Below the pieces are notes generated by a model, which saw nothing but the letters and a program-made list of their open reading frames with translations, was not told where the DNA came from and did no database searches. The position numbers and the translations under genes are program-made. From assembly GCA_002269645.1 (NCBI GenBank), contig NIVC01000105.1, forward strand, positions 411,992 through 475,991: a DNA stretch of 64,000 bases, given 5' to 3'. The DNA comes from Macrostomum lignano (taxonomy: Eukaryota). Below, piece by piece: positions 25,536 through 62,823 of the stretch; position 1 is the stretch's first letter; every line of letters starts with the position of its first letter.

Positions 25536-25590
25536 TCTCTGAAGTGCGTGTCCCAATGCTATGCTTTGATTCTGCTTTTGAGTTTAGTCA

Positions 25591-37238: not shown

Positions 37239-39395
37239 TGTGTACCACTTGACTTACAACTTAGGCAGGCTATAGTTTTTCATATTTTTGCTTTAATTGT
37301 TTTTTGACAGCGTTAAAAACCTGGTTACAAATGAAAATGCCAAAATTTTAGTAAAATTTTACCAAGAAGCACAAAGCTCGGTAGGGTGGCGGTTTTGACT
37401 GTTTCTGAGTGTAGTAAGCCTAGGCCTAGGCCCTAGGCAAACGTTAAAAAAACAAGACTAAGTTAAGTACGAGACCATTTCTTTGTCATAGAAGCATGTT
37501 ATTCGAAAAAAATTATTATATTATAATAGGAGAATAGAAAGAATGTAATACTTTTAATAGGATAATCAGCATTGAAGCAATAATGAACATCAATACATAT
37601 GTATGCTTGGCTTTGGCTGCCGCTGCTGATGGATGATGTTGAGGTGGGGGTGGTGAAGAAAATAAACAAGATTTGAAATTGTAAGATTAGGGAGAATAAA
37701 AAATTTGGGTTTGTCGTCGGCATGTAAAGCCGGAAAATTGCACAAATTGCTGCGCTGATTCTTCTCCTAGGTTACTCCGTCTGCCGGGTCCTCAATTCCG
37801 GGGGGAGGGTAGTCGTAATCGTAGTCGAGCGGTCTTGTAGCGGCCCGGGTCGTTCAAATTAGGTCCTCAGACACCGAAAAATTATAGTTTGTCGAAATTG
37901 CTAGTTGTGTTACTCTCAGTAGTAAAGTAGCGCTGCCACCACCGTAAATGTCGTTTTACGGAACGTTTAGGGTCTCAGAGTTTTCTTTGAGATGAGACTG
38001 ATTGGTTATTTTACGCCCCGCGGGCAAATGACTCAATAGAAAACTAAAGGCTTCGATTCTGAACAACTGAATAAATATTAAATGTTGCGAACTTATTATT
38101 ATTTCGTTAATTATTATTACGGTTAGTTATTATTGCTACGCGAGATGAACGAGCAGAGACAGGAGCAGAAAAAAAGAAGAAATAAAAAAAAAATAAAACT
38201 AACTAAACTAAAACCCAAACAAACACACTTTAAAAAAATGACTCCAGAGATAACTCATATATAACATATTGGCGTGAAGGATCCCAGGGGTGGGACAGAG
38301 GATGGGACAAGGGAAGGGACAACGAAGGGAAAAAGAGGAAAACCCGGCCGCTGGAAACATTAAAACAACAGGGGCCAAGGGAGGGAACAAAAAAGGGAAC
38401 AGACGAGGGAGCAAGGGCGGGAACAAACGGGGGAACAAACCAGGGAACAAAAGTTGAAAAAAATGACGTCAATCCGTCCGGCCGTCCTCATGTCGTCGCC
38501 CGCGGGAGATCTGCCGTCGTTCACCCCAGTGGTAGACCGGCCTACCACAATGTTCAGCCAAATTTGAAAAAAATATTTAACATTCTCTGTGTTAATAGGA
38601 AATATATACAAAATGAGCAAAAAACTTTTTCACACGAAAAATTTACTTATAAAAAGAATACTACCTTAAGATCCAAAAGCTTAGGATTGCCCATTAGCAA
38701 AGAAAAAAATATACGCAACTGTGTAATTTGTTTTAATCGTAAATTTTCGTTACCGAAAACAACTGGACTAACAACAACCCAGAGACTTCTTAATCTTATA
38801 TTCTTTGCTGAAAAAATTCTGCCCGACAATGGCGAGGACTAACCTTTTTTTCAACTCAAAGCTACTTATTATCTGCTTCCCCAGATTCACAAATTGAGGT
38901 TATGGAAAGGTAGACAAATTTTAGAAAAACTCAGAAGCTGAGCCTATATCGTTGGTTTAAGACTGTCCATCGAGCTCGCTGAGAGACGAAACTGCCAGGT
39001 TTTTTTGCAGTTTCAGTCGTGGCGTATACATGTATGCATATGTAACACGCGGTATTTGGCAGCACCAAAAACACGAAGGCCCCGGCCGTGAGGCAGTGAT
39101 CGCTTTATTTATGCAAGTTGAAGTTAAGCCTGCGATGTACATAGAGAGCGAACGTACATTAAATCAATACGATGATTCAGCTAATTATTTGTCACGATTG
39201 CTAACAGTTCAGACTGCCTCTAAGGCAAGGAATAAAATATTACATTTCTCCCCCACAAAAGGAGCATAGCAACAGGGAATAAAAAGATGAGAGTGAAACA
39301 CAGCTAGCGAAATGTAGAGTAAAAAGAGGAACGCAGACTGTAATATACATTTCAATCACAGTCTCTGACAGTCCATGGCCTCAGTCACTCAGCGC

Positions 39396-42300: not shown

Positions 42301-42752
42301 CTGAAGTCCAGGCACATGTTGCAGGCCTTGATGAAGTCCAGCCCGATGATGACGGCAGCAACCAGACCTTCAGACACGTAAAACGGGTGCCGCCGCTCGA
42401 TGCCGCCGAGCGACACCGCCAGGCTGGCCACCTGCCGCACCGGCACCGCCTGCTGGTTGACTGCCCGCAGCTCCAGGTGCACGCTCTCCAGCTGAGCTGG
42501 CCGCATGCTCTGCAGGACCCGCTTGTCCACGATTGACACCTGGCTGCCTGAGTCGATAAGCGCCGTGACGTCCGCGCCTCCGATCCTGCACTGCAGCTTG
42601 GATGTTGACGGGTTCGGCCTGATGACGACAGCTGCTGCGCTGCTGCTGGCTGCACCGCTCCCCTCTGCGCCCAGGAACAACCCACTCACGCTGGGGCCCG
42701 CGCTCAGAACTGGCCAGGGGCGCGGGCTCTGCCCCGGCCTGTGCCGTTTCCC
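39396..42752 (-). CDS. pol: Gypsy pol (protease, RT, RNase H, integrase), broken by 3 frameshifts near 41500, 41000 and 40300
   Basis: LIDSGSQVS, LRLTIDYRELN, YMDD, YTDAS, HEGIGGHFG...CQTC, IDVL / SDQG / ERGN, WVHVNRLR. Confidence 0.92.
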
Positions 42753-43494
42753 GGCGGATGATTGCAGTTCCTGGCGATGTGGCCGCGGCGGTGGCAGTTC
42801 CAGCAGGTCACCTCGCGCTGTCTCCTCGCACTGCGAATCGCGCAGGAGTCCGAAACCTTTGAGCCCAGCTTTGCCGCCAGGTCTTGGACCGTCGCCTGCA
42901 GCGAGCTGACCGCAGCCCTCAGTTCTGCCGTCTCCGCGCTGCCTGCAGCTCCGGCTGCCGCTGCAAGAGGCTGCTTGAATCCGTCCGTGGTGGCAGAAGG
43001 CAGCTCCAGTAGCAGTTGTGCCCGTGCGAGAGCGTCACTCACGGTCTTGGCTGACGCGTCCGCTCTGATCTGCTTGCTGATGTCCATCGGCAGTCCGCGA
43101 ATAAACTGGTGAGTCAGCATGGTGGCCGTTGCGCCTGCCTCGCTAATGCCAGCGTCCTTTAGCAGCTGCTTCACGTGATAGAGAAAGAGCCGAGGACAGC
43201 CCGGCAGCAGCTTCCGGCTCTCGAATGCATCCAGCGCTGAGAATTGCTGGCTGTCCGGGTGAAATGCCTGGCTCAGAGCTTTGGTCACTTTGCTGTAGTC
43301 GCTCTTGCTATTCTCGTCGAGCTCAAGAAAAACAGCCAGAGCCTCACCATCCAAAAACGTTGGCAGGTGCAAATGCTTGTCATTTACCCACTTGTTGGCT
43401 GCCGCGCACAGCTCAAACCGCTGGAGCCACTCCTTAAAGTTGCCTGAGTTGCCTGAGCCCTAGGAATCGCACGGTGACTGCCGCCCTCTGCCAT
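42704..43494 (-). CDS. gag: Gypsy gag (one frameshift near 43460)
   Basis: ATG 43494, then FKEWLQRFELCAAANKW..LPTFLDGEAL and a CCHC knuckle CWNCHRRGHIARNC. Confidence 0.88.
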
Positions 43495-44444
43495 AGTACA
43501 CTCTGCTACCACTTGTAACACGCGGTATTTGGCAGCACCAAAAACACGAAGGCCCCGTGAGGCCGTGATCGCTTTATTTATGCAAGTTGAAGTTAAGCCT
43601 GCGATGTACATAGAGAGCGAACGTACATTAAATCAATACGATGATTCAGATAATTATTTGTCACGATTGCTAACAGTTCAGACTGCCTCTAAGGCAAGGA
43701 ATAAAATATTACACATATAGCTAAGTACGTATAGCTACTAGTAGTAGCTATAGCTCTTTATACAGTGTACATTCAAAAAGCAACTGACTTGAATAGAAAT
43801 ACTAGAGGCCCTTATAATTACAGTAAAACCCATGTATCTGGTGCGACAAAAACAACAAAAGCAGAATATACAGCTTACAGTACGCTTTCAGCTGGGTCTT
43901 TTTGGAAAGCAGCACATTTACATGTACAGTACGATGCGTTTAGTAGTAGGCGTGCGACTGTAGGCCAGTACGATCGCCTAGCCTACCGAAGGAGGACCAC
44001 GCCGCCCACAGAATTCCTTTCAACATCTCGACTGGACTGAAAGGTTCTGCTTCCTACATGAGAGAGTTCGTTCGCCTTTTCTGTATACCCTTACAAATTA
44101 ATACAATTACATGTACCATGCACACTACTGATTTTCCAACTGATTTAGCTTCCACCCTTTTTTATTTACACATGATCCCATGTATGATCTGTTGATGACG
44201 ATAAAATCCCTGAGCTAAGCCGGGTTGCTTGGCAGTCGCATATCTGTCACAATGAGTATTTAAAGTTTGCCACGGAGACTGCAGAAGGTGCAGCACAAGG
44301 AGTGCATGTTTTCAAATATCGTGAGGATGGCGTAAGGCTATAGGTTTACGTCATTTGCATGCGGATCGTCATCGCGAGACGCAAGATAGATAATTGATCG
44401 TAGGCCGTCCTCACAAAAAATACACTTTTTTGCGTTCTATTTCG

Positions 44445-45389: not shown

Positions 45390-46560
45390 CAACTGCTGAC
45401 GAGGCCGTTGATGAGTTTGAAGATGAGGTAGAGAACCCAGGAGTCGAACACGTTGGTGAGTGGCAGTGGCACATGGTTCAAGCTGACACTGATAATCGAC
45501 CATCAGCCTTGCCTGAATTCCTCGGTACCCCCGGTGCACGACCTGATTGGCATTCTCCACATGCTGCGGATGGAAACGAAGAAGCTTTCCTGAAGCTATT
45601 TCTGACGGATCAACTGTTTGAAGATATTAGCTGATGGACCAATGCAAAAGCTTGGAAGATCTTTCAGGAGGCAGAGACTCAGGATGCTGTACCGAAGCTG
45701 GTGTTAAACTGGCGTGATTGCTCGACTAATGAAGCTCGAAAAGTTGGTGGGCATTGTGCTGCTCATGGGAGTCGACAAGAAGCCAGAAATAGCCAGCTAC
45801 TGGTCAACCGATCTGATCTTTCACTGCCCGTTTCTTTCCAAGCCTTTCTCTCTATCAAGAGACCGATTTAAGCAGCTCCTGTCGTGTCTCCGTTTCTACG
45901 ACTGCTCCGAGGCTTTAGGTGCTGGTCCATTGGCAAAGGTGAAGCCCTTTCTCGATCGTGTGAGGCACCTCTGCAGCAATAACTACATGCCCCGACAGCG
46001 ACTTTCAATTGTTGAGACGCTGGTGCTTTACAAAGGGAGAGTTGCTTTCAAGCAATATATCCCGTCGAAGCGAAGCAAGTATGGCATAGAGCTGTACTGC
46101 CTCTGCGAGACTGAGAGTTCATATTTATGGAACTTCGTCATACACACGTCTCCTGAGGTTAATCAACAGTTTGGTGAAGGACTCGGATGTCAAGGCTTGA
46201 GTATGAGCGAGAGAGTTGTGGCAGAGCTGTGCCGCGGTCTCCTCCATCTCGGACATCATGTGTTCACTGATAGTTGGTTTACATCACGCCGGCTGGCCGA
46301 TTGGTTGCTGCAACACGATACGCTGCTGACCGGACGGTGCGGAAGGATCGCGGCATTCCCGCTGATTTGCAGGCTGTCAACATCCACCCAACTTCATCTG
46401 CATTCGCACGTTCAGGTGACCTCTTAGCGTGTAAATTTGTCGACAGGAAGCAAAGCGGCACCAAGACTCTGTACTCGCTGGACACGGTGGGCAAGAAAGA
46501 ATGCATTCAGGTTCAACGCAACCGTCGCGGTGGTGCAATCGAATTTTTGTTGGTGTTAAT
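45390..46560 (+). pseudogene. Decayed piggyBac (PGBD4-like) transposase
   Basis: FLKLFLTDQLFEDIS*WTN, YWST...LSRDRFKQLLSCLRFYD, FKQYIPSKRSKYGI, HHVFTDSWFTS, TVRKDRGIP. It has a stop, frameshifts, and the first catalytic Asp reads SIVE instead of SIDE. Confidence 0.9.
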
Positions 46561-47524
46561 GTTCGTTATTTAACTGAATTGTTATGCGTTGCAATATTCG
46601 TGTATGATTTTTTTCGGCTCTATTGCAGTCTCGTGCAAGTGCATGCACAGTTTTGAGTCTCCTATTCAGGCACAATCCCTTTACTGGCCGTTCCCTTTCA
46701 TCGTCTACCCACATGTACCTAACCACCTACTACCTACCTACCTACTCATTGTACAATCCTGCTTACTCGTATCTGACACATGCTCCAGTGTTTGCATCTT
46801 TTCCTACTTGGAAATTGTCCCTTATAAGTCATGTAATTAGACTATTCCGGCTTCATTGGGAACAAGCTTACTTCCTACAAGCAATTTTTACAGTTTTGTT
46901 GAAAACTTCCTCAGTATAAACGAATTATTAAAACTACAGGTATGACATATGACGTATGACATCTAAGCTAAAAATTCTCATTTTTGCGTCATCTACTATT
47001 TGCAACATTCTTAGACACTGACCCGAAATCGGGCCATTCCCGTCGGGAACGGGTGTGCTGAGATGATGATTGATTTGCCATAGACTTTTACAAACGCACA
47101 GCCGTTCGCTTCGGTGCTGGTGGGATGACCCGAAATCGGGCCATCCGCCCGCTCATGGTTAAATAACTATACTAAACAAATTTGTTAAAAAAGTTAATCG
47201 ACTGCGGCTTTTTGATTCATCTCTAATTTGAACAGTTTACAGTGTTGCTCGTTGCTAATCGCGATTAAAAGTGAACGGTGAACATACTTTTCTGACAACA
47301 AGAATTTCTAATCACGAAAACGAAGAAAAAAGGAATATAATATGTACGGTTATTGTATTAATAAATATTTCGTAATAATTGGTAAGTTCGCAATTATTAG
47401 TAGTTATATCGCGACCAAAGTACGCCTGAGGCAATACTTAAGGGACAAAAAAGAACAAAGAAACTTCATGGACTAATATTTGCTTATCGTTAAATAGGCA
47501 AACAAGACTATTATAATAACAGCA

Positions 47525-49215
47525 TCATTCAACGTCAGATACACGTACTTCTTCAGGGAGCTGCTTTTCTGAGCCTTGAATATCTTTGCGTTGTCCTTGC
47601 GGATCACCCAACTGCTGAGCGCTCGATACTTTGGTCTTCTTCCTGCCAAAGGAGGCGATGTCGAAGATGAGCTCGAACAGCTCGCACAGGGTGAGCAGAG
47701 ACATTCCCAGGTAGATGCCCATGATGCCGCCGACGTCCGAGATGAAGTCTGCAAACCGTAGTCGATCGAGAAGTTCATCCGATCGCACAGAACTCGATGC
47801 GGCTTGAAGTGCACTTTGAGCATGTTGCTGCGGATGTATGAGGACACGATCGACTCGTTTCCGTTCACGACGAGGTCGAGAGCCGGAACACTCAGATTCT
47901 TAGACTTGGCCCTCATCCAAACAGGTTCGATGGAGCTGCTGACGAACGGCATCATTGAGCTCTGAGTGGGCCAGTCGGAACTGGAGATGGTCGCGCTGTA
48001 CTGCAGTGTGCTGCAAAGTCGCTTAGCTTTACATGCTTCTTTCGATATTCCGTCGAACTGAGTGGTGAGAGGTTCCAGAGATGGGTCGCTAAAAAATACC
48101 AAGAAGTTTGGATCACCTGTAAGGTTAAGTGCGAACTTCTTTCCACGCAGAGGCCACGGAAGAGGACCGGCATCGCTTGACAGATTGACGAGCTGCTGCA
48201 TCTGTCGGTGGAACTCGTAGTAGAAGCAGTACGAGTAGCTGTACGAGTGCTTGTATGGAGTCTCGTCGTACGGGTTCACGAACTGAACGTCCGGCGGGTC
48301 GCTCAGACAGTCGAACTGACCAGCCTTGTACACCTGCTGCGTCATGTCGATCTCGACGGTGTGGGACTTTCCGGGTCCAAGCGAGAACGAGCTCACGAAA
48401 TCGGACGGATACTCACCTGGAGGCGTGAGGAACACTTTCACACCTGCTTGTCTGTCGGGTCCGTTGTAGTCGGCGACATCGAGCGACCAGTCGGACACAG
48501 GAATGAGAGTTCGTCCTGCGTACACCATCTTGCGGATCGAGTGTCCGCTCGATGCGAGTCCTTGGAACGCCGAGTCCGTAACCAGGGTGACCACAATGCC
48601 GGATGATGAGCCGGTCTGTTCAATCTGTTGTTGCCACGTGCTGTTCAGAGTCCACTTGAGACAGCGCAAGTACATCGGATGGTAGAAGGTCTGCGCTTCG
48701 ATGGGCGCATACTGGGCCATTCCAAATAGCTTAAACTTGAAGTCACTCGTGATGATGCTCTGTTCGTTTCGGTGAGCCAGAGCATCAATCAACAGCTGAT
48801 ATGATATTGACTGAGGATAAGCACGGGATAGCCTCATTTCTTGGGGTGTAGTTTCTGTTAATCCGTTTATTTGCAATCCCCGCCGTAGGACGGTTTGAGA
48901 GCTATTGAGCTGATCGTTGATTGCAGCAGCCGATGCCTCATCAATAGTAGCAGAGTAGCTGCCAGAGATCGGGTTCTCGAAACAGGCGTACACATCCGGG
49001 AACTGGAAGTTGAGACTGTTTCCATCAAGCGAGCTGGTGACCTGCCGAGACTGCAGCTTGACAACGAATTGGTAGAATCCGTAAAAGAAGAGTCCCGACA
49101 TCAGCAGCATCAGGATGAGCCAGAAAGCTCGCACAACCAACGGTTTGCTGCTCACTACTCTGGGCAGTCCGTGCGCTGAGGTGGAAGACATGGCTTCCTT
49201 GATCGGCTGCAGCAT
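47525..49215 (-). CDS. DEG/ENaC (amiloride-sensitive channel family) subunit, copy 1, with a 1-bp deletion at ~47749
   Basis: Pre-TM1 STSAHG, TM1, FPDVYAC and TM2 DFISDVGGIMGIYLGMSLLTLCELFE. The sequence reads gaagtctgc where paralogs read gaagtcctgc. Restoring the base gives a stop at 47525. Confidence 0.9.
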
Positions 49216-50027
49216 AAATGTTTCTGGTTGCAGTTTCTGGGTTCCAGATTTAGTCTCGCATTTACTGCTCGTAGAGAAGTTTTAGGTCGACAAACTTATC
49301 AGCATGTATTTATACAACGATACTGTACTGCATTTCTAGGATAGCAAGTCTGAGTGGCGATTCCCATTATTACGAGCGAAGATTTCTGAATCGCTTCTAG
49401 ACTTGCTTTTCCACAATGGACTGTCAAGGGCCTTTATGTATTGGCCAGGTCTGGATGCGTTTTCATTTTGGTTAATTGATTAATTAATGTGGTCCCCTTG
49501 TCGAGTATCTATGCCATTGTTAGCAGCTTGATTGTGCCCAGTCCGAAAGCAGTAGACTGCTTGAGTGGTTATAGGTACTTTGGATATTTTTGGCACAAAA
49601 TACACCCTAGTTTCCATTCCATTTCGATGCCCTACAAATATAGTACTTTTCACTGGATTGCTGTCCACTGAGAGAAATAACTCAGCAAACATGGTATTGT
49701 GCTTCAGACCCACTTTATATAATTAGTATTTGTGACCGCTCCGCCAACCGTCAATTATCAAATAAAGAGAGCAAAAATTATTCCAGAGAGACATATCTGG
49801 TATTTCTACACACAAATCTATATTCTTGTATATATATGAAGGCTAAGACTAATCTTATCTCGTACTTGTCTACCAATAGAGAACAATTGTCAGATGCAGG
49901 TAGCCACTGGGAAAATAATTGGCTATTGTCAACGCTAAACATTCGCACTCACATGTACGTGAACAGTAAAATTTACTCAAGAGTCAAAGCTTTATTGCAC
50001 AATGGATACGTTGCTGCTGATGTTTAA

Positions 50028-51752
50028 TTATTCGGGAAGATCTCTTGACGATTGATGATTAGTCAATGCTGCCACACCAATCTTGTTTGTTACTCCACTT
50101 GTGTTCGAAGGTCTCCATTTTTTTAAGCTGACTGAGACGATGTCGAAGATAAGCTCGAACAGCTCGCACAGGGTGAGCAGAGACATTCCCAGGTAGATGC
50201 CCATGATGCCGCCGACGTCCGAGATGAAGTCCTGCAAACCGTAGTCGATCGAGAAGTTCATGCGATCGCACAGAACTCGATGCGGCTTGAAGTGCACTTT
50301 GAGCATGTTGCTGCGGATGTATGATGACACGATCGACTCGTTTCCGTTCACGACGAGGTCGAGAGCCGGAACACTCAGATTCTTAGAGTTGGCCCTCATC
50401 CAAACAGGTTCGATGGAGCTGCTGACGAACGGCATCATTGAGCTCTGAGTGGGCCAGTCGGAACTGGAGATGGTCGCGCTGTACTGCAGTGTGCTGCAAG
50501 GCTTCTTGGTTTTACATTTAGCGTTTGTTACTTTAGCAAACTGCTCCATGTTATAATTTGCTTTGTAAAATATCAAAAAGTTTGGCTCGTCAGTAAAATT
50601 CGTGACGAACTTTTTTCCACGCAGCGGCCACGGAAGTGGTCCGACAGCGTTTGACAGATTGACGAGCTGCTGCATCTGTCGGTGGAACTCGTAGTAGAAG
50701 CAGTACGAGTAGCTGTACGAGTGCTTGTACGGAGTCTCGTCGTACGGGTTCACGAACTGAACATCAGGCGGGTCGCTCAGACAGTCGAACTGACCAGCCT
50801 TGTACACCTGCTGCGTCATGTCGATCTCGACGGTGTGGGACTTTCCGGGTCCCAGCGAGAACGAGCTCACGAAGTCGGACGGATACTCACCTGGAGGCGT
50901 GAGGAACACTTTCACACCTGCCTGTCTGTCGGGTCCGTTGTAGTCGGCGACATTGAGCGACCAGTCGGACACAGGAATGGGAGTTCGTCTTGCGTACACC
51001 ATCTTGCGGATCGAGTGTCCGCTCGATGCGAGTCCTTGGAACGCCGAGTCCGTAACTAGGGTGACCACAATGCCGGATGATGAGCCGGTCTGTACGATCC
51101 TTTGTTGCCACGTGCTGTTCAGAGTCCACTTGAGACAGCGCAAGTACATCGGGTGGTAGAAGGTCTGCGCTTCAGCGTCCTCGAAGTCAAGCATTCCGTA
51201 GTTGCTATTGAACTTTATGTCGCTTGAAATGACTGCCTGTTCGTGTCGGTGGGCCAGCGCGTCGATTAAAAGTTTGTAAGATATCGACTGTGGAAAGACA
51301 CTTGTAAAGTATTTTTTAAAATGTTTTGTTTCTCTGTCCAATTTTTTTAACTCGCGCGTTAGGGCAAAGTCGAAGCTGTTGAGCTGATGATTGATTGCAG
51401 CAGCCGATGCCTCATCCACAGTCGCAGAGTAGCTGCCAGAGATCGGGTTCTCGAAACAGGCGTACACATCCGGGAACTGGAAGTTGAGGCCATTTCCTTC
51501 AAGCGTGCTCGTTACCTGCCGAGACTGCAGCTTGACAGCGAATTGGTAGAATCCGTAAAGGAAGAGGCTCGACATCAGCAGCATCAGGGTGAGCCAGAAA
51601 GCTCGCACAGCCAGAGGTTTGCTGCTGACAATTCTCGAGAACCCATGGGCCGAAGTTGAGGCCATGGCCATCTTCAACTGTTGTTTCATTTTGATTTGAG
51701 AATAACTCGTACAGTTTTTTTGCAATATGAGCTTGAGTTCCTTTCGGTTCAT
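50028..51752 (-). CDS. DEG/ENaC subunit, copy 2, intact intronless ORF of 574 aa (aligned start may be 51689)
   Basis: STSAHGFSRI, TM1, FPDVYACFENP, GVKVFLTPPGEYP, FISDVGGIMGIYLGMSLLTLCELFELIFD. Confidence 0.94.
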   Translation of the reverse strand: MNRKELKLILQKNCTSYSQIKMKQQLKMAMASTSAHGFSRIVSSKPLAVRAFWLTLMLLMSSLFLYGFYQFAVKLQSRQVTSTLEGNGLNFQFPDVYACFENPISGSYSATVDEASAAAINHQLNSFDFALTRELKKLDRETKHFKKYFTSVFPQSISYKLLIDALAHRHEQAVISSDIKFNSNYGMLDFEDAEAQTFYHPMYLRCLKWTLNSTWQQRIVQTGSSSGIVVTLVTDSAFQGLASSGHSIRKMVYARRTPIPVSDWSLNVADYNGPDRQAGVKVFLTPPGEYPSDFVSSFSLGPGKSHTVEIDMTQQVYKAGQFDCLSDPPDVQFVNPYDETPYKHSYSYSYCFYYEFHRQMQQLVNLSNAVGPLPWPLRGKKFVTNFTDEPNFLIFYKANYNMEQFAKVTNAKCKTKKPCSTLQYSATISSSDWPTQSSMMPFVSSSIEPVWMRANSKNLSVPALDLVVNGNESIVSSYIRSNMLKVHFKPHRVLCDRMNFSIDYGLQDFISDVGGIMGIYLGMSLLTLCELFELIFDIVSVSLKKWRPSNTSGVTNKIGVAALTNHQSSRDLPE

Positions 51753-54700
51753 TTGTCGCTTTTAAATCGTCTCGCAACAGTATAGTGGGTGGTGTGCTGT
51801 TTGACGAACTAATGGCGTTTTGTTTGGCTATTTTTTGAGTGGGAAGTACACTGCTATCGCTTAAATAGTGCAACTGATCTATAAAGCGCTGGAAAAGACT
51901 TCTGAAATTGTATCTTGGGAAAATACGAGAATTATTTAAAATGACTATGGGGGCTTTGGCTATGGAAAAATTTAAAGGTAAGAATTAATCATTACAGCAC
52001 ATCAGTGACAGTGTTAAAGCTTTTATCAAGTTTCAGCTGCACGCTGATATGTCAATATTTGGTGAGCTTTTCGATTTAACGTATTATTGCTTTTCCGTTT
52101 GCTTGGCCAGCCGCTCTTAGCAAACTGTAGCTAATTGCTGCTGCCAAAAGTGACTTGTTATTTGAGTGTAAATTCCTGCATTGCTATCTATTAAAAGCTT
52201 CCCTCCATCGGACGCAACCAGCAACCAGGTAAAAAGCTTTTTATTTGACAGGCAGCACACAGCTTAAGCTGATGGAAAATTATTAGATTGGGGGAAACTG
52301 AGGGATGAGACAAGACAGGGGAGAGGGAAGATAAAAGAGGAGAGGAGATTAGAGAAAAAGAGCACGCTTTTTCTATTGTAAAAGCAAACTCAACAACGGA
52401 ATTAATAATCTTTGCGCACTCGTGTCTAGATCGTTGCTGCACTCAAAAGCCGTGCACCATGTCTCCACTGGTGAACGCCCGAAATGTTTGTATAGTCTAA
52501 AGCAGACAGTTTGAAGAGTTAGCAGTCACACCAAACGTGTGACTGTCAACAATTATGAATGAAATTGATCTTGAAATAGATGGGCGCTTCGAAGTTTTGG
52601 CGGGGCGCTAAAAATCAATGACTATACTCACCGACTCTATAGGACCGCCGAAACTAAATAGCCAGAAGTAATAAAATACGACTTGTAAACTCACTACGGT
52701 CAACTTTACTAAACAATCGAAGATTGTGCCTGGTTTTGTTTGGGCCACAAACGATTGCGTCGACGGAAATTGTGAACTAAGTAAATTTTTGCGCGCCTTT
52801 CAGGCATCGAAACAGGAATACAACAGATTGCTTATCTGCGAATAGTCTATGGTCAAGCCGCCCTCCATCTTTGGATATTCCCAACGGTTATATTTGGATA
52901 TACCCATTTGCAGATGAGCAATCTGTGTATTCCTGTATCAATGCGTTTGCAATGATATTTTTTATTCGATACAACAAAGCTGAATAAACAGATTACGAAA
53001 ACGGTAACACAGCCTGCAGCACAGCAGTATCCATTGCGGATACGTCAGCCGAAGAAATATCTTTAGACGTTACACTCACATCGGCCGAATTGCATGGTTT
53101 GTTCCGCATGGGATCCTCGGGGTAAGCCTCTTCTTCGCTTGGCAGTGGTGGCAGAGCATCATCGTTACCGCATTCAATGAATCGGATGAACTCCATCAAC
53201 TCTTAGTCATCCGCCTCGTCACGTCCACCCATACTCAAGTCGCTGAGAAAGTTGACCTCATTTCCATTCAAGCCGTCAATGCTTTCAATCGGCAAATTCG
53301 ACCAATTTATCATTCGTATGAGTGGCATGAATAGAGGTTAGGGCAAACAGGAGAAACAGGAACATGTATCCTCTGCTGCAGAGTTCCAGCTTATAAGACC
53401 ACAACTTCATTTAACATGTTTCGTCTATGGTAATTTCAGACTGTTCCGCTTAACTTTTCGTTCCAGACGTTTATTCTATGGCCATCATTTGGCTTGCACC
53501 AAGTGGAAAATGCCTATGACACAAATCCCTAGAATCGCTTAGTGAACAATTCCCGTCTGGGAAGTTGTGTCCTAGCCGTTTTGAATTGGTTTTTTGGACG
53601 AAAATAGACACAATTCCACTATCGAGAGGTCACGCTTCACACACAACTGCCATAGCGTCGAGGCCGGTAGGTCTCCTCCTTGTCCTCGTGTTTTCTATGT
53701 AAGAAAGGTCAAATATAGCGTATAATCTTTGCCTGGTTCTGGCCATAGACATTGTGCAGCATTTGCAACAATTTGGCTTTATTGGTGTACCCCTAAAAAC
53801 CCCATTCAAAATGATAGTCGTACAATGATCTACGAGTTTTTGCAATCAAAAAACTACTCAAGTATCTGCGGTATCTACCGAGTTTAAAAAATATCGAAGT
53901 TAAATTCAATCGTGGTGTTGCTTCCTTTTACAGTAAATAATAGGAAACCCATTTCGGCCACAATAGCATTATTTGCCGGAATTGTTAAATGTAGATTGTG
54001 TTGTGTTTTTAGTTATAGTGAAGTTCACGTAGACTCTCAGGTCTCGCTTAATATGTTTATACTCATGCGCGTTGACAACAGTGTTACGCAGTCAAACGAA
54101 CGATACTCATAATTGAACGCACGATGCATATAAGGTAATTGAACAGCCATGTATACATTCTAGCCCCAAAGTTAGTCAGTTAGTTAAAACACTTGGACCC
54201 GATATGGACAGTTACTACAGATTGTGTATATGGTTGCTAGCCGGCTGGGATCCTTTTGCAGCAACCGCATATGTCATGGTCATAAAATATAAAGGGAACC
54301 ATAACAATCTACGAGATGCCCTTTTCCAGAAGTTATAGCAATACTAAGGTTCAGCCGCTACACTGATTGCTGCAGGAAAAAGGGAAAATACGAGTACATG
54401 CTGACATTGCTCATAATATACGAACGTACACACACCTTTCTCAAACAGATGTCATAGCTGCTCGAAAGCCTGCGGTCCTCCTCTTCCATGGCTTGTCCTT
54501 CTTTAGCAGTTTGATGAGGGGCTCCGCAAGCCTGGAGAGGCTGGGAATGAAGTTGCCAATGTACTTCACGAAACGAGCCACTTCCTTGGCTTCAGTATTT
54601 TTGAATTGGTCAACATATTATTCTTCAATTTCAAAAAATCATCAAAAATTCCAAGAAAGATCTACCTGAAGGCAGCCATCAAAACAAAAATTTATCACGA

Positions 54701-54968
54701 TAAAAATATTAGCAACAACAACAAAAACAAAATGCGCACGCCGTTATTGGGCCGCACTTCTAAAACAGTCAGGTCCCCCAGTCAGAGTCAGAATAGGGGC
54801 TCTCGCATCCCTCAGAAGCAGCTCGGAGTAGGTGATGAGGTCAATCGCTCATCTTTCAGAAGTCAATGGGATCAAATTCTTGCACGCTTAATCCAACAAA
54901 TAAAACGCGTTTATTTACTACTGTTGTAGGATATTTCAACGCCATGTCAGATTAAAAAAATCTTTAAT

Positions 54969-56680
54969 TCAAGGCTCGCTTGAGATGCTGCTGATGCTGA
55001 GGCTCTTTGTAGACTGTTTTGGCGGCGGCGCGTGACTCTTTTTTCTGACTCCCAACTGCTGGATTGAAGAAGCTGCCGGCTTGGAGCTTGACGCTCTTGC
55101 TTTCTTCCTGCCAAAGGAGGCGATGTCGAAGATAAGCTCAAACAGCTCGCACAGGGTGAGCAGAGACATTCCCAGGTAGATGCCCATGATGCCGCCGACG
55201 TCCGAGATGAAGTCCTGCAAACCGTAGTCGATCGAGAAGTTCATCCGATCGCACAGAACTCGATGCGGCTTGAAGTGTACTTTGAGCATGTTGCTGCGGA
55301 TGTATGAGGACACGATCGACTCGTTTCCGTTCACGACGAGGTCGAGAGCCGGAACACTCAGATTCTTAGACTTGGCCTTCATCCAAACAGGCTTGATGGA
55401 GCTGCTGACGAACGGCATCATTGAGCTCTGAGTGGGCCAGTCGGAACTGGAGATGGTCGCGCTGTACTGCAGTGTGCTGCAAAGTCGTTTAGCTTTACAT
55501 GTCTCTTTCGATTTTACGTCGATCTGACTGGTGAGAGGTTCCAGAGATGGGTCGCTAAAAAATACCAAGAAGTTTGGATCACCTGTAAGGTTAAGTGCGA
55601 ACTTCTTTCCACGCAGAGGCCACGGAAGAGGACCGGCATCGCTTGACAGATTGACGAGCTGCTGCATCTGTCGGTGGAACTCGTAGTAGAAGCAGTACGA
55701 GTAGCTGTACGAGTGCTTGTATGGAGTCTCGTCGTACGGGTTCACGAACTGAACGTCCGGCGGGTCGCTCAGACAGTCGAACTGACCAGCCTTGTACACC
55801 TGCTGCGTCATGTCGATCTCGACGGTGTGGGACTTTCCGGGTCCCAGCGAGAAAGAGCTCACGAAATCGGACGGATACTCACCTGAGGCGTGAGGAACAC
55901 TTTCACACCTGCCTGTCTGTCGGGTCCGTTGTAGTCGGCGACATTGAGCGACCAGTCGGACACAGGAATGGGAGTTCGTCTTGCGTACACCATCTTTTGG
56001 ATCGAGTGTCCGCTTGATGCGAGTCCTTGGAACGACGAGTCCGTAACCAGGGTGACCACAATACCGGATGATGAGCCGGTCTGTACGATCTTTTGTTGCC
56101 ACGTGCTGTTCAGAGTCCACCTGAGACAGCGCAAGTACATCGGATGGTAGAAGGTCTGCGCTTTGATGGACACATATTCGGCCATTCCGTAACCTGTTTT
56201 AAACTTGAAGTCACTCGTGATGATGCTCTGTTCGTTTCGGTGAGCCAGAGCATCAATCAACAGCTGATATGATATTGACTGAGGATAGGAACGTGAGAGC
56301 GTCATCTCTTGGGGTGTAGCGTCCATTGATCCGTTTCTTTGAAGTTTTCGCCGTAGGAGTGTTTGAGAGCCAATGAGCTGAGCGTTGATTGCAGCAGCCG
56401 ATGCCTCATCAATAGTAGCAGAGTAGCTGCCAGAGATCGGGTTCTCGAAACAGGCGTACACATCCGGGAACTGGAAGTTGAGACTGTTTCCATCAAGCGA
56501 GCTGGTGACCTGCCGAGACTGCAGCTTGACAACGAATTGGTAGAATCCGTAAAAGAAGAGTCCCGACATCAGCAGCATCAGGATGAGCCAGAAAGCTCGC
56601 ACAATCAGCGGTTTGCTGCTCACTACTCTGGGTAGTCCGTGTACTGATGTTGAAGCCATGGCTTTCTTGACTTGCTGCAT
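54969..56680 (-). CDS. DEG/ENaC subunit, copy 3, with a 1-bp deletion at ~55885
   Basis: ORFs 55859-56680 and 54969-56120 join at TPPGEYP. The sequence reads acctgaggcg where paralogs read acctggaggcg. Confidence 0.9.
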
Positions 56681-57649
56681 GCTTGATTTTTCTCGGTTTT
56701 AATTTTTTGAATGCGAAGCTTCCTCTCTGACCGGGATGACTTGCTATTTTTGTGATGCTTTTTTAACCATTTGGCGATCGCCTCCGTTCTTCGCCCCCCG
56801 GCGGACGGCTCATTGTGCATTGTCTGATCGCATATCTATGTAAAGTACATTGCTCAATGCTCAATATCGGCACCGAACAAATCTTCTAAATAAATATTAT
56901 GGCTCCGCCCATGTGGAGGCTTTGAGCTTTTTCTACATTTTTTAACTTTCTTTTTTCGTCGGAGTCCGCCATTCATTTTCGCCACTGCTCTACCACTCAC
57001 ATGAAAATCAATTCTATTGAACTTGAAAGTGACTGGTCATACGCAGACAAGTCTGCTGAAGTTAAAATATGGGTTGCATTGTAACACTGCAACTATTTAC
57101 TCAGCTAGACGTTGCTCACAAAAAATACGAACGTATTGTACAGCACCTTTTACAAACAGATGCCATTGAAACAGACTTAGTAAAAGGCTTTTTGGTATAG
57201 AGAAAGTGCATTTTGCTGGTTGAAGCCACATAAACGCATTGGAAGCAGGGCAAACGATAGAACCTTAAATCAATACTCTTTTGGAACAAATGGTTTCAAA
57301 AAGATCCCACTGAATTATGGATATGCTATGAAAATTTGCTGTGCTACTGCAAACGCACTGTGTAAAATTAAAATCAACTATTTATCAGAGAGCGAGAGTT
57401 GTGTCCATCAACTTGGGAAGAGAGCCAAAGCGATTTTGGGAGTGTTTGTACAGCTTAGAGATCGCGATTTATGAGTAGCAGCCAAAATTAAATCTTAGCA
57501 AAGTTTTGAAACACTGCATTATAAGTGCAGCACACTAGAGCTCTGAAGAAGAATGCAGCAAGTACTGGATGCCACAGCATCTTCCGAAACAGACCGACTG
57601 TCACGGGTTGGAAGCAAGACGCTGTACGAGCGTATATGCGATTGGAAAC

Positions 57650-57825
57650 AGGTGGTGGAAACAGGTTGAACTTCCAGTTTTCCTGTAAGCTTTTTGTTAT
57701 GAGAACCCGATCTCTGGTAGCTACTCTGCGACTGTGGATGAGGCATCGGCCGCTGCAATCAATGCTCAGCTCAGTGGCTCGCAAGTTGTAATGAGGCGAG
57801 GGCTTTCAATGCTTGGGTACGTCAG
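57650..57825 (+). pseudogene. Inverted DEG/ENaC N-terminal extracellular fragment
   Basis: GNRLNFQF.. then, after a frameshift, CYENPISGSYSATVDEASAAAINAQLSGSQVVMRRGL on the strand opposite to the cluster. Confidence 0.8.
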
Positions 57826-58520
57826 TGTTACGTTTTCTACTTCAACAATTATTACATCCTCAAGGCTATCATCGGACATAAAAGTATAAGTCGAAGAAGC
57901 TTTGTTTAGAGTACCGCGATTCACGGCTTATATTTGCCTCTAGCGAGCGCACGCAGATGATTGTTCTTTGCGGTACTGTAGAATTCGGCTCTTAAGGTAA
58001 TGAAAGGTCCTACCCTAGACAATAGACATGCAGAGAGAACTAAAGTCCGTTTAGTCTTTTGTCTATACACAACATTCCCCCTTTGTCAATATTTTTTCTC
58101 CGGATGTGCACGCTTTAACTATACTGTAGGCTCTCCTCGCACGAGATTCTCCTCGGCTTGGGACGTCTTGGACCCGCCGAGTTGATTCACTCTCTCGCCG
58201 CTCTTTCTCGGTAGTAGTTTGGTCGCTCTGAACTCTCCTAGGATCCTCCAGAATAGTTCAGAGAGTAGTTCAAATGATAGATGACGAGCCTGGACACAGC
58301 GGTTTGTTGTGTCCAGGTAATTCTGCTCTGACGATTTGGTCGACGTGTCGCTTCCAGGCTTGTCCGTTGACCAACAGTGCGGACTATCACCTTGGCAGAA
58401 ATCCACCTATTCTCTCGCTCCTTTCTGAAGTCCAACGTCAGAACTGAGTCTCCTTGGATGCAACCGACGCAGAGTTGAACAATAAAGATTGGAGTCTGGT
58501 GAATGAAGAGGTGTCTTTTC
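57826..58520 (-). mobile_element. 3' remnant of a Gypsy element: integrase C-terminus, PPT and putative 3' LTR (58074-57826)
   Basis: IQGDSVLTLDFRKERENRWISAKVIVRTVGQRT resembles the integrase C-terminal SH3-like segment. PPT AAAGGGGGAA is followed by TGTTG at 58074, with a possible ...TAACA end at 57826. Confidence 0.6.
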
Positions 58521-59729
58521 ATGAGCTGTAGCTCGCATACAAGCTAGACTCGCTTGCTCCCTCGAGCTAAGACTTGGCGCAGTATTTTTTGCAATGTGCC
58601 TTTCTGTTCTGATCTCTGTTTACGTTTTTTATATTTTTCACTGCATTTGTTTTGTATTTTCTTGTTATTTTTATATTATAGATTCAGCAGTTAAGAACGT
58701 GTATCTTTTTTTAACAGTTTACCAGCATCAAAATTTATCAGCACAAAACTTCTTAGTCTATTTTGTCCTGAGAAAGGGCACATAAACTGCATGTGCCGCT
58801 GTCCAATATTGGATAATCTACTGCGATGCATTAGGCTGTAGTATTGAAGTATTGAATTTACATTTAGCAAAACGACATGACGTCATTCGTGATCTACATG
58901 TAAAAATCGCACACAGTGAATCAAACCACGGAGTACATTTGCTCATCATGTAAAGTGAATTAAACGAGAAAGTAAATTCACTTAGGCAAAGTACGAGCGT
59001 AAATTAACCTGCTGAACGCATGGTGCCGGCTAGGTTACGAGCGTAAATAACCTTTCAGCAGTAAATTTGCTCCCTGGAAGATTTTGCAGGAGGATTATTT
59101 GCCGAAATTTACTTCACCAGCGCAGCAGCGGCGTCAGTTAATTTACGTTAATAAACGTTAATAGCGTGACGAAATTTATTATTGTTTGAAAGTTAATTAA
59201 CCATTAAGCTACATGTATTAGTTATAATCGACCCTCAATATTAACCCTCGTTTTCAAGGGGCAATAAAAATTTTGTGCTGAGAAAATAAAGACTTCCTGT
59301 CTACGTAGTGTATTTTTCGGCGAAAAGTGGCCTTCAAAACCTTTTCCGTGAAACGTGATCCTCGCTTCCTGCATATACGCTGCTTGTCCTAGTCTAAGCA
59401 AGGCTTAAGCTGTTCGGTTTAGAGCTAAATAAAAAATTCAAGTTCGAATTTCTGAAAAAGCATTATGAATGACGAGCATTTCTAACTACGACAAAGAGGA
59501 AAAGAGAACAGATTATCATGTGCAGCTATTTTATGTTAATAGAAGTTCGTCATTAACCCTTATTTTGTATCGCCTCAAAAGAACCAGCAAAGCTATACTC
59601 GTACGCCAGGAAAGAAGAGAACTTAAATAATGGACTAATATTTGCATGTTACTCGAGATCTGCATAACAGTACATGTACTATTACAATAATAGCTTCCTT
59701 CAACGGCAGATACTTCCTCAGGGAGGATG

Positions 59730-60314
59730 CTATGCTGTGCACTGATTATCGTTGCTTTGTTCTTGCGGATCACCCAACTGCTGAGCGCTCGATACTTTGG
59801 TCTTCTTCCTGCCAAAGGAGGCGATGTCGAAGATGAGCTCAAACAGCTCGCACAGGGTGAGCAGAGACATTCCCAGGTAGATGCCCATGATGCCGCCGAC
59901 GTCCGAGATGAAGTCCTGCAAACCGTAGTCGATCGAGAAGTTCATCCGATCGCACAGAACTCGATGCGGCTTGAAGTGCACTTTGAGCATGTTGCTGCGG
60001 ATGTATGAGGACACGATCGACTCGTTTCCGTTCACGACGAGGTCGAGAGCCGGAACACTCAGATTCTTAGACTTGGCCTTCATCCAAACAGGCTTGATGG
60101 AGCTGCTGACGAACGGCATCATTGAGCTCTGAGTGGGCCAGTCGGAACTGGAGATGGTCGCGCTGTACTGCAGTGTGCTGCAAGGCTTCTTGGTTTTACG
60201 TTTAATAATTGCTACATCGGCAAACTGCTGCATGTAAGCCATGTAAGAAGTCACTTTGTAAAGTATTGAAAGGTTCGGCTCGCTAGTAAAATTCAGGTAG
60301 ATTCCCGCAAACAA
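59730..60314 (-). pseudogene. DEG/ENaC copy 4, C-terminal third only, truncated at the mariner element
   Basis: Thumb segment through TM2 and tail FGRKKTKVSSAQQLGDPQ. Homology stops near 60310, ~90 bp from the mariner inverted repeat. Confidence 0.85.
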
Positions 60315-60399
60315 CGGGCATGTTAATGTCAGCGAAAGTGCATATCAATGTAATTAACTTCCCGATTTTTCTCAGACAGAAATTGATTTCGCTTGTCGG

Positions 60400-61554
60400 G
60401 AATGTTCTCGCGGTTTCTAGAAAATTCTACCCCTAGAACTTTCTGGAAAATTCTAGAAGCTTACTATGTGGGTATATATTGATGGTGGGTGCGTGCGATC
60501 TTGAGAGACTACTTTTCATGATTGTTGCTATCGAAGACAGATCAACTACATGGATCTCTCTCGACCCTATATTTGTGGTCTGTTACTATATGACTTCAAA
60601 TTTGGCACCAAAGCAGCCGAATCGAACCGCTGCATTAACAGTGCATTTGGTGCTGGTACTGTGTCTGAATGCACTGCGCAAGATTGGTTTGCTCGGTTTC
60701 GCCAGGGAGATTTCAGCCTCGAAGATTTGCCCCGGTCAGGGCGTCCTTCTGAGGTGGATGATGACCATCTACCTGTGCGCACTCATTGAGGCCGACTCCC
60801 AAAAAACCACGCGTGTGTTGGCGCAAGTCCTTGGGGTAGACCATCAAACGATCACCACTCACGCTTGCATCAACTGGGCAAGGTGTACGAGGGAGGGGTG
60901 TCCCAAAAGTCGGTGCAATTTATTCACTACAGCCTTTTCTGACCGATCAGAAATATTTAGTTTGTAGCATCTGAAAAGAGAATTATCTGCCCGTTAAAAT
61001 GACTTTCTATTTATTTCTCTATCTGCTGGCATTCTTGAGATATGAACACTTTTCTGCCCCACCCCCTGCGCTACTTCTTCAAATTGCCATTGACCAAAGC
61101 TTTGTACCTGATGCACGAAACAACGAAACATTCAACGAATCAGCAAAACATCCGCTACATGAAAGCTGAGGAAAGAACAGTTAAAATTGAGTCATCAACA
61201 TTTTCCTGAGGCTTCTCCACATAGTTTACCACTGCGTTGCACACATTCTGCCATCCGCTGTATATGTCGTCAATATTCCCCCAACTGGCGCCCAGCGACT
61301 ACAATCTGCTCTTGGCTTTGATGAACGCCTTGACGAGTAAAACGCCTTTTGCTGATGAAAAAGCGCTGGATAACCGGCTCAACGACTTTTTTGCCTCGAA
61401 ACCTGAGAAATTCTACACTGATGGCACTACGTCTCTGCCTGAAAAAATGGCAGAAGGTGCTTGTTTCGGATGACAATTACTTTGTTTCTTAAGGTCCTTC
61501 TATATTTTAAAAAACTCCGTTTGGAAGAAGGTTCTAGAAACCGCGAGAACATTC
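60400..61554 (+). mobile_element. Decayed mariner (Hsmar1/SETMAR-like transposase) lacking the central catalytic region
   Basis: LLYDFKFG..AAESNRCINSAFGAGTVSECTAQDWFARFRQGDFSLEDLPRSGRP (60550-60789) and PQLAPSDYNLL...DFFASKPEKFYTDG (61237-61473). A 23-bp perfect inverted repeat GAATGTTCTCGCGGTTTCTAGAA lies at 60400-60422 and 61532-61554. Confidence 0.85.
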
Positions 61555-62315
61555 TTGAAAACCGAATAGAACAATAGTGCATTGTAGATCAGGTAGCTTT
61601 AGACAGAAATTTTGGAGTTCAGCTATATCAATTATGAACAAGCAGAGTCTTTTTAGCAGTCTTGTAAATCAAAGCCGGCAAATTTGAAGTCAATGCACAA
61701 AGCAAGTTAAAAGTAGATAGAACACTTTACCCGGTTTTTCTTCAGGACAGCCGTGGGTTATCTTGACGCCATGTCGCTTGTCACTATTCATCAGTGGACA
61801 AGGCCGCAATCTCTCCTTCTACTCTTACGTCGTAGTTGATCATGCACGGCTCAGTGAATGTTTAAACGGTTGAAAGGGCCTGTCAAATTAAGCTCATAAA
61901 GTGGAGTCCGAGTAACCTTCCGGTATGTACACAAATTATACTTCATGCTGCTCGCAGTGACACCAGGAAGCTGGATTTGGCAAAAAAAGTTACAAAATTG
62001 GACCTGGAATTGGACAGAACAAGCAAAGGGACAATTTAGAACTATTATGTAAGCTTCAGCTCGCAAGGTGGAGTCCCTAATTATTCCCTTGATTGTTCTC
62101 TCCTATCCCACCTCCAATTTTTGCTCGGCGCACTGGTAATTTTATCACAAGGCGTAATAAGCTTCGATTCCAAAATCCTTCATGCGTACGACAATCAACC
62201 ACTCCTCGGATTATTCCATCATGGCACGCAGGCTTCTGTGCTTGAACTCATTCTCCTGGCTGACCTCAGATGCTGACTGTTTGAGGTCGCAGGTTAAGGC
62301 CTTGCTGTAACTATA

Positions 62316-62419
62316 CTAGGCTACATCAAAAATGAGCTAGAACAGCTCGCACAGGGTGAGCAGAGACATGCCCAGAGAGATGCCCATGATGCCGCCGACG
62401 TCCGAGATGAATTCCTGCA
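62316..62419 (-). pseudogene. Isolated DEG/ENaC TM2 fragment with stops
   Basis: QEFISDVGGIMGISLGMSLLTLCELF*LIFDVA*. Confidence 0.85.
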
Positions 62420-62823
62420 CCAAAAGCTAGTTCACACATCCATTGCAGTAGGCCCAGACGACACAATGGGGTGTACCATGCTGTCACCTATCATTGGACG
62501 ATAGTTATACATGTACGATTATGTGTGCTTTAATTAGTATTTCCGAGTAATCCAATTATAGTATTAATCAAAATTGGAGAACTGTTATGCCTTATGATCC
62601 GTTAATGCAGCCAATACGTATGTGCTTAAACTGTGTCTATGTCCAAACTTTGTTAATCCTTCGAGTTGTAAGCGAGTATATCAATACCATCTTTCCGTGT
62701 GTATGCCTTCTTCCAGTTCCAAAATACAAGCGCTCGATTTGGCTTGGCCGCAAGCACGACCATGCCCCTAAACTCTCATTGACTGACAACTAAATAACAT
62801 TGTGCTCCACATAATTAGCCATC

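Follow-up and report, generated by a model that had tools for sequence, protein, structure and literature searches.

The window analysed here, a stretch of 64,000 nucleotides (nt) from the flatworm Macrostomum lignano (contig NIVC01000105.1 of GenBank assembly GCA_002269645.1, positions 411,992–475,991 of the forward strand), contains between 47.5 and 62.5 kb six segments with homology to the DEG/ENaC family of ion channels (amiloride-sensitive sodium channels). They were detected by tblastn with copy B of the array and with P0001, a paralog from outside the window, as queries; no such segment was found elsewhere in the 64 kb. Positions are those of the window, and residue (aa) numbers are those of copy B. 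A tandem cluster of intronless, highly divergent DEG/ENaC channels in birth-and-death evolution had been predicted from the sequence alone. The tandem array is real: tblastn yielded all six segments, and the open reading frames (ORFs) of A, B, C and E match the Pfam family ASC (PF00858). The locus is probably best understood as a Macrostomum-specific array of intronless DEG/ENaC genes, in which birth-and-death is combined with gene conversion of a core of the coding sequence, while two cassettes and the C-terminal tails escape exchange.

Members of the array and anatomy of copy B

The original prediction counted three full-length copies and three fragments (Table 1). The number of segments was correct, but the intactness of A and C was not, since each carries one deletion of 1 bp, and an uninterrupted full-length ORF is present only in copy B. 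The ORF of copy A as found extends from 47473 to 49215, with the second transmembrane helix (TM2) out of frame. The lesion of copy C lies in the middle of the ectodomain, where the DNA alignment has a single C at 55885 instead of CC as in A and B. With a placeholder X at the deletion, the proteins comprise 563 aa (A) and 570 aa (C), and no further stops were encountered in either. An interpretation of the frameshift in copy C as a tiny intron (the sequence GTGAGT follows) was rejected, since A and B read the same bases in frame. Translation of copy B probably starts at M22 (51687–51689), judging from the invariance of this methionine in the family alignment (A1). An AATAAA hexamer follows the stop codon of B after 31 nt and that of C after 53 nt; a canonical polyadenylation hexamer was absent within 400 nt past the stop of copy A.

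Fragments D, E and F represent partial duplications and are dead. Fragment D is inverted with respect to the other members, and its variable part, a version of cassette 1 (see below), is closest to that of P0001. The ORF of fragment E is still open, with arginine at the near-invariant position of Cys413.

Two antisense ORFs, 48208–48606 (plus strand, 132 aa) and 50682–51059 (plus strand, 125 aa), are situated in copy A and copy B, respectively, within core 1, which is homogenised; they probably arise as a side effect of its conserved, GC-rich sequence.

Table 1. Coordinates of the array members, of the features of copy B and of neighbouring transposons
Feature	Position	Strand	Evidence and remarks
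Copy A, near-full-length DEG/ENaC coding sequence	47525–49215	minus	Pfam ASC 2.9e-29; tblastn in frame -2, then -1
Frameshift of copy A, single G vs GG in B, C, E and F	47749	minus	DNA alignment; five codons upstream of 'SDVGG'
Copy B, intact gene, one ORF, 574 codons	50028–51752	minus	Pfam ASC 1e-47; AlphaFold 2 (AF2); Foldseek
HG motif of B, H36-G37, cytoplasmic N-terminus	51642–51647	minus	Translation
First transmembrane helix (TM1) of B, aa 47–76	51525–51614	minus	AF2 helix; translation
TM2 of B, aa 506–545, with 'SDVGG'	50118–50237	minus	AF2 helix; translation
Selectivity-filter position G-M-S of B, G522-M-S524	50181–50189	minus	Translation
Segment aa 29–120			85–86% nt identity B vs A/C, 96% A–C; silent-site divergence (dS) B vs A/C ~0.33
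Variable cassette 1 of B, aa 121–195	51168–51392	minus	63–64% nt identity B vs A/C, 87% A–C
Core 1 (aa 196–367) and core 2 (aa 419–538)			95.5–99.5% nt identity in every pair, including E; dS B vs A/C ~0.07
Variable cassette 2 of B, aa 368–418	50499–50651	minus	60% nt identity B vs A/C, 95% A–C, 70% E–B
C-terminal tails, 5' and 3' flanks			~40% nt identity, i.e., unrelated, even A–C
Copy C, near-full-length	54969–56680	minus	Pfam ASC on both half-ORFs; tblastn
Fragment D, inverted piece of 165 nt, aa 77–131 (beta1-beta2 and start of cassette 1)	57695–57859	plus	tblastn, 74.5% to P0001; inverted repeats I1–I3
Fragment E, last third, truncated at the 5' end, aa ~385 to end, open ORF with intact TM2	59730–60314	minus	Pfam ASC 1e-17
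Fragment F, decayed beta11-12 and TM2 region, three in-frame stops	62214–62480	minus	tblastn; translation
Mariner (Mos1-type) transposase remnant, degenerate	60550–61473	plus	Pfam HTH_48 2.9e-13 on stop-masked frame
piggyBac-type transposase fragment, beside the array	45714–46427	plus	Pfam DDE_Tnp_1_7 8.9e-42
Gypsy-type long terminal repeat (LTR) retrotransposon, outside the array	39041–43713	minus	Pfam rve, RVT_1, RNase H, protease, zf-CCHC; LTRs of 204 nt, 97% identical

Copy B matched the ASC profile over positions 3–455 of 455 with 163.7 bits (cut-off 23.6); the ORFs of A, C and E were also above the cut-off, with values from 3e-29 to 1e-17. The HG motif, the TM2 sequence SDVGG and the G-M-S filter, which had been noted beforehand, are all present in the translation of copy B. 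The HG motif was also found in A, C and P0001, and G37 is nearly invariant in the family alignment, in which D512, G514, G515, G522 and S524 do not vary at all. On reading the alignment, Ser511 provides a small residue at the degenerin position, immediately before D512-V-G-G.

The AF2 model of copy B (predicted local distance difference test, pLDDT, 72; predicted template modelling score, pTM, 0.68) has its two transmembrane helices on either side of a mixed alpha/beta ectodomain. A Foldseek search with this model gave FaNaC structures first (7yvb, 1.8e-21; 8on8, 1.1e-20), followed by ASIC1 and ENaC (6e-18 to 1e-15). The fold could be aligned with chains of FaNaC, ASIC and ENaC over about 500 columns; for FaNaC the template modelling scores were 0.52–0.61, at about 17% sequence identity. 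The same order was obtained when a profile of the clade was compared with the sequences of the PDB, with values of 3.6e-41 for FaNaC, 2e-27 for ENaC and 2e-26 for ASIC. The ectodomain of copy B possesses seven cysteines (residues 99, 206, 324, 351, 413, 419 and 495), of which 206, 324, 351 and 419 are invariant in the family alignment; the relatives P0006 and P0011–16 retain an additional C-x-C motif and other cysteines which B lacks, so that copy B does not possess the complete conserved set (thumb disulfides) of the family. From its sequence and model, copy B should encode an ordinary subunit of a channel that is trimeric and selective for Na+; family membership, fold and anatomy were read directly from these comparisons, and from them we infer the channel function.

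Mosaic divergence and integrity of the copies

Over their whole length, A and B as well as B and C share 87% of their nucleotides, and A and C share 95%. The description of the channels as highly divergent therefore applies to a comparison with characterised DEG/ENaCs, but not to the copies among themselves. Along the gene, silent-site divergence varies about 25-fold (Table 1), with the lowest values in the two cores and the highest in the cassettes, for which the pooled dS of B versus A/C is about 1.9, i.e., saturated. Where two copies encode the same residue, their codons differ silently in 4% of cases in the cores versus 27–28% elsewhere (Fisher's exact test, p = 8e-12 for A–B and 3e-10 for B–C). 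An unsupervised maximum chi-square scan singled out cassette 1, with a value which was reached in none of 300 shuffles. The GC content is 0.54–0.57 in the cores versus 0.37–0.47 in the cassettes.

Fragment E is a mosaic in its own right: its cassette 2 is 70% identical to that of B, but only 49–50% to those of A and C, its middle 381 nt are 99.5% identical to C, and its tail is similar to that of A. Fragment D carries a fourth version of cassette 1 and fragment E a fourth version of cassette 2.

The ratio of nonsynonymous to synonymous divergence (dN/dS, omega) was below 1 in every segment. In the cores it was 0.14–0.28, with 0.28 for A–C; in the cassettes it was 0.22 for B versus A/C and 0.62 for A–C, the latter not significantly below 1. 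Positive selection on the cassettes was considered and rejected, because of the omega of 0.22 and the saturation of silent sites. The cassettes are accordingly old, and purifying selection acts on them.

Differences in evolutionary rate could perhaps account for the mosaic, if the cassettes changed rapidly and the core were extremely constrained, with no exchange between copies. Among DEG/ENaCs at large, and even among FaNaCs, the finger region varies most (PMC11026163), and the cassettes are less conserved also in comparison with more distant paralogs. However, the contrast resides in the silent sites, both in dS and at same-residue codons, and the omega of the cassettes between B and A/C is neither relaxed nor positive. 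The core is only 41–46% identical, at the protein level, to the next paralog, P0002, and so is not intrinsically invariant, and the parts of fragment E are nearest to B, C and A in turn. We consider rate heterogeneity by itself very unlikely. Since silent divergence differs so sharply along the same pairs of genes, and since fragment E is itself a mosaic, the data point to old paralogs, with flanks that diverged long ago, among which the cores were repeatedly exchanged by gene conversion. Neither a simple recent duplication nor rate differences alone account for these observations.

The birth-and-death evolution originally proposed is supported insofar as intact, frameshifted, truncated, inverted and stop-bearing members coexist at one locus, but on its own it fails to explain the range of silent divergence; more conspicuous than birth-and-death is the way in which the scaffold has evolved in concert. 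In a limited literature search, no description was found for DEG/ENaC clusters of a core homogenised by conversion together with two ectodomain cassettes that have escaped it.

Copies A and C may be pseudogenes of very recent origin; otherwise they contain single-base assembly errors. If the deletions were errors of the long-read consensus, both genes would be intact and the array would consist of three working genes and three fragments. Each lesion is the loss of one base from a homopolymer of two (GG to G, CC to C), the remaining 563 or 570 codons are free of stops, copy C has kept its AATAAA hexamer, and the core omega of A–C still indicates constraint. Furthermore, the assembly was obtained from PacBio reads with Canu and short-read polishing (PMC5730564), and polishing is unreliable among paralogs which are 96–99% identical. 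Against this stand the lack of a canonical polyadenylation hexamer behind copy A, the cassette omega of A–C, and the fact that D, E and F are truly dead, so that decay is in progress at the locus. Consensus error is a considerable possibility, although on balance we lean towards true lesions.

A related question is whether alleles, homeologues or duplicates produced by the assembly were stitched together in tandem. Macrostomum lignano is a hidden polyploid, its assembly contains 180 Mb of duplicated blocks with at least 95% identity (PMC5730564), and A and C are 95% identical. Duplicates of this kind are nevertheless hardly conceivable here: homology between the copies ends at the start codon and within the C-terminal tail, and the flanks and tails are unrelated even between A and C. 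The lesions and the cassettes also differ from copy to copy, and fragments are found in both orientations.

The whole array, including copy B, could also be an unexpressed, decaying remnant without present function. Five of the six members are damaged, and a search of 5.8 billion clustered proteins at 90% identity or more to B returned only the UniRef model P0001, which places B outside the transcript-based GenBank annotation of M. lignano. The same protein collection, however, also lacks run-assembly copies of the housekeeping gene ECHS1, so that the absence of B says little about its expression. Copy B has an open frame, all motifs of the family and an AATAAA hexamer after its stop, and its omega is low (core 0.14, cassettes 0.22). 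A dead array appears unlikely.

Relatives, gene structure and neighbourhood

A HMMER scan of 1.84 billion representative proteins yielded 633 matches below 1e-3, of which only six were below 1e-30; the named ones among these six, and the nearest neighbours, are all from M. lignano. The closest relatives are P0001 (79% identity), P0002 (41%) and P0003–5 (27–29%), likewise from M. lignano. A word-indexed protein search, carried out with copy B and with a profile of 11 sequences, returned P0001 as the sole match, and exact-sequence look-ups of B and P0001 in contigs gave no match. The next groups are proteins from run assemblies (e.g., DRR639838), followed by sequences of Owenia and Saccoglossus.

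A neighbour-joining tree, which was constructed without labelled ASIC, ENaC, FaNaC, HyNaC or PPK sequences, united A, B and C with P0001 (bootstrap 100%) and these with P0002 (96%). The array clade was located among other paralogs found only in M. lignano, with low bootstrap values for the wider grouping. The possibility that the copies nest within a characterised subfamily had been raised beforehand; no such nesting was apparent, as the named relatives below 1e-30 are from M. lignano, and the closest solved structures, those of FaNaC, are only about 17% identical. As far as databases show, the clade would appear to be a genuine branch of the DEG/ENaC family, uncharacterised and specific for Macrostomum. 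The literature found on M. lignano DEG/ENaC clusters consisted of species lists and of a FaNaC study which included three other M. lignano genes.

Some database entries of relatives deserve correction. P0001 is listed in UniRef as A0A1I8GD92 with the label 'Acid phosphatase'; it carries only the ASC channel domain, and the name is wrong. P0002 corresponds to GenBank PAA48052.1 (L001:9728–11544). At least 220 nt ahead of its annotated start are also homologous to copy B, and the model looks N-terminally truncated; it also contains a gap of 50 nt with a change of frame at 10657–10708.

The coding sequence of copy B is a single ORF over the whole ASC profile, hence a single exon. The contrast between single-exon channels and spliced neighbours, which had been pointed out earlier, was borne out by ECHS1, the gene for mitochondrial enoyl-CoA hydratase, which is spliced, with exons on the minus strand at 25266–25556 and 23831–24490. 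An intronless coding sequence of 1.7 kb is atypical for M. lignano, because its genes contain on average about 5 introns of 1.1–1.4 kb (PMC5730564). Gene structures of the relatives were read in the public assembly GCA_002269645.1. P0003 is a single-exon gene, P0157 has two introns, and P0002, P0005 and P0159 have about one intron or gap each of approximately 50–115 nt, the value for P0159 being inferred from the span of the gene. All five are singletons within 10 kb on either side, except for a short additional ASC-homologous piece at a second locus of P0159 (L007). Poverty in introns is a trait of the whole clade and older than the array.

Intronless copies in a transposon-rich neighbourhood, with homology limited almost exactly to the coding sequence, could also have arisen as recent retrocopies or as cargo of a transposon. 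Neither A-runs of seven or more nor A-rich tracts were detected within 800 nt downstream of any copy, nor were inverted repeats of at least 60 nt found to flank the copies; recent retroposition and transposon cargo were rejected on these grounds. Besides, all long copies are arranged in tandem on the same strand, distant paralogs of the clade (25–40% identity), situated at other loci, likewise have no introns or hardly any, and mosaic silent divergence is unlike that of independent retrocopies of one parent. A recent origin by either route is most unlikely. One retroposition may have occurred in the distant past, when the clade arose; any such event would predate the array, because the distant paralogs are also poor in introns.

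The array had been described as interleaved with piggyBac, mariner and Gypsy elements. This is true only of mariner, whose remnant, immediately upstream of the point at which fragment E is truncated, is the sole transposon inside the array, whereas the piggyBac fragment and the Gypsy element are both located to one side. In the Gypsy element, Gag (zf-CCHC), protease and reverse transcriptase, RNase H, and integrase are distributed over four long ORFs; the element is young, but already split. The remaining ORFs of the spacers, which were scanned singly, gave no Pfam matches, and scans of the window with Rfam and for tRNAs were equally negative.

In the remainder of the window, the protein encoded by the ECHS1 exon 23831–24490 is 100% identical to an M. 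lignano protein, and the intron of the gene carries a minisatellite with units of 23 and 42 nt (24603–25194). The region 2300–30500 is tiled by minisatellite arrays, more than 20 in number and all different, whose units measure 7–152 nt; each array has its own unit and a strong skew in strand composition. Examples are a 23-mer repeated 88 times (17931–19912), a 47-mer repeated 29 times (29147–30476) and a 20-mer repeated 40 times (13656–14466). An ORF of the PRA1 family (21662–22207, minus strand) continues into a 28-nt minisatellite (21393–21801), which is open in several frames (region 21301–22207) and yields repetitive peptides similar to 'SCWASLPDPQLLGQPPRSSVAGPA', their coding status being putative only. 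Two ORFs of the region 26683–29022 (minus strand), one of 411 aa without a Pfam match (27787–29022) and one of 169 aa (26683–27192), may be exons of a further gene. An AT-rich block (32000–36000, GC content 0.32–0.35) contains an ORF of 130 aa (34022–34414, plus strand) with a helix-turn-helix match (HTH_24 and others), which is probably the N-terminus of another transposase.

Proposed evolution and comparison with known systems

In the AF2 model, cassette 1 covers helices 114–137, 142–152 and 159–173 together with the following strands, which corresponds to the finger position. Cassette 2 spans helices 392–397 and 402–416, just before the long palm strand 420–432, where the thumb is located. 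The peptide pocket of FaNaC1 consists of the finger helices alpha1–alpha3, and thumb helix alpha5 carries the movement to the pore; in ENaC, ASIC and mechanosensitive members, sites of modulation or sensing lie in the same corner (PMC11026163).

We propose that the array is old and has been evolving in two ways at once. Birth-and-death would proceed by duplication, by truncation beside a mariner insertion, by inversion and by decay. Gene conversion, at the same time, would keep two core blocks, one comprising beta-ball and palm, the other palm, knuckle and TM2, almost identical in all copies. The finger helices alpha1–3, the thumb region and the cytoplasmic tails would escape this exchange and persist as old alternatives maintained by selection. 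The outcome would be subunits with a common pore and scaffold, which differ in their cytoplasmic tails and in the surfaces used for gating or modulation. Because finger and thumb carry the surfaces that sense ligands or stimuli and transmit gating in solved DEG/ENaCs, it is reasonable to suppose, from the model and by analogy, that the copies differ in this manner, and the cassettes might then be connected with stimulus specificity.

Several points weigh against this reading. The boundaries of cores and cassettes were set after the protein variability had been viewed, although the unsupervised test agrees with them, and three full-length copies with one outside paralog are too few for mapping the direction or the tracts of conversion. 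The assignment to finger and thumb depends on a model of medium confidence and on alignments of low identity, and the confidence of the model is lowest in the cassettes (pLDDT 53–78). With only seven cysteines in the ectodomain, the thumb architecture of copy B may differ from that of solved channels. Both frameshifts may be artefacts, and copy B may be silent.

A more elaborate version would regard the locus as a set with a common scaffold and alternative sensors. Cassettes and tails would be selected, pore and palm would be interchangeable, the subunits would assemble into heterotrimers of differing stimulus specificity, and fragments D and E would serve as a reservoir of cassettes feeding the full-length genes by conversion. 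We think this extension quite improbable as it stands.

DEG/ENaC channels are gated by stimuli as different as protons, peptides, force and proteases, and research into the part of the ectodomain that determines the stimulus is continuing. Paralogs which are nearly identical in pore and palm, with old and maintained alternatives of finger and thumb, represent a natural series of chimeras for probing those regions, and M. lignano is amenable to RNA interference and transgenesis. In addition, the locus provides a record of an uncharacterised branch of the family that is intronless and restricted to flatworms.

Among solved channels, the FaNaC/WaNaC group (Aplysia FaNaC, 7yvb; Malacoceros FaNaC1, 8on7–8ona) is the best match to the array clade, both by profile and by fold. 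Common properties are the N-terminal H-G, TM1, an ectodomain of finger, thumb and palm, and a GxS filter in TM2 (G-I-S in FaNaC1, G-M-S in copy B); in FaNaCs (PMC11026163) as in the array, the finger helices alpha1–3 are hypervariable. On the other hand, identity is only about 17%, residues of the pocket cannot be aligned, even among FaNaCs (PMC11026163), and the closest relatives of the array are paralogs from M. lignano, not the FaNaCs of annelids and molluscs. Dandamudi et al. found that three M. lignano DEG/ENaCs did not respond to RFamide or Wamide in oocytes, and published trees place them beside, not inside, the FaNaC clade (PMC9234716). By sequence comparison these three are different genes from those of the array.

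The resemblance to ASIC and ENaC consists in the same fold, the HG motif and the GxS filter. ASIC1 has 14 cysteines in its ectodomain, and vertebrate ASIC and ENaC genes comprise many exons. The array differs in its identity of about 15–17% to these channels, in the seven ectodomain cysteines of copy B and in its intronless genes.

With the pickpocket genes of Drosophila, the degenerins of C. elegans, the HyNaCs of cnidarians and the TadNaCs of placozoans, the array shares membership in large families of fast turnover, with divergent subunits, clustered paralogs and pseudogenes. Many members of such lineage-specific expansions serve chemo- or mechanosensation, and a sensory function of the array, as originally suggested, is a guess by analogy, though a possible one. 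The array differs from these expansions in being flatworm-specific, in its intronless coding sequences, and in its homogenised core with two escaped cassettes.

As to the mode of evolution, the primate red/green opsins, RHD/RHCE and the globins are comparable: in these genes, too, conversion keeps most of the coding sequence nearly identical, while short functional segments differ and flanks diverge. The array, in contrast, encodes a subunit of an ion channel, and most of its conversion partners are damaged. What is known from other systems is the expansion of a lineage-specific family and tandem turnover in a repeat-rich genome; what is new is an uncharacterised cluster with a clear pattern that points to domain-restricted gene conversion.

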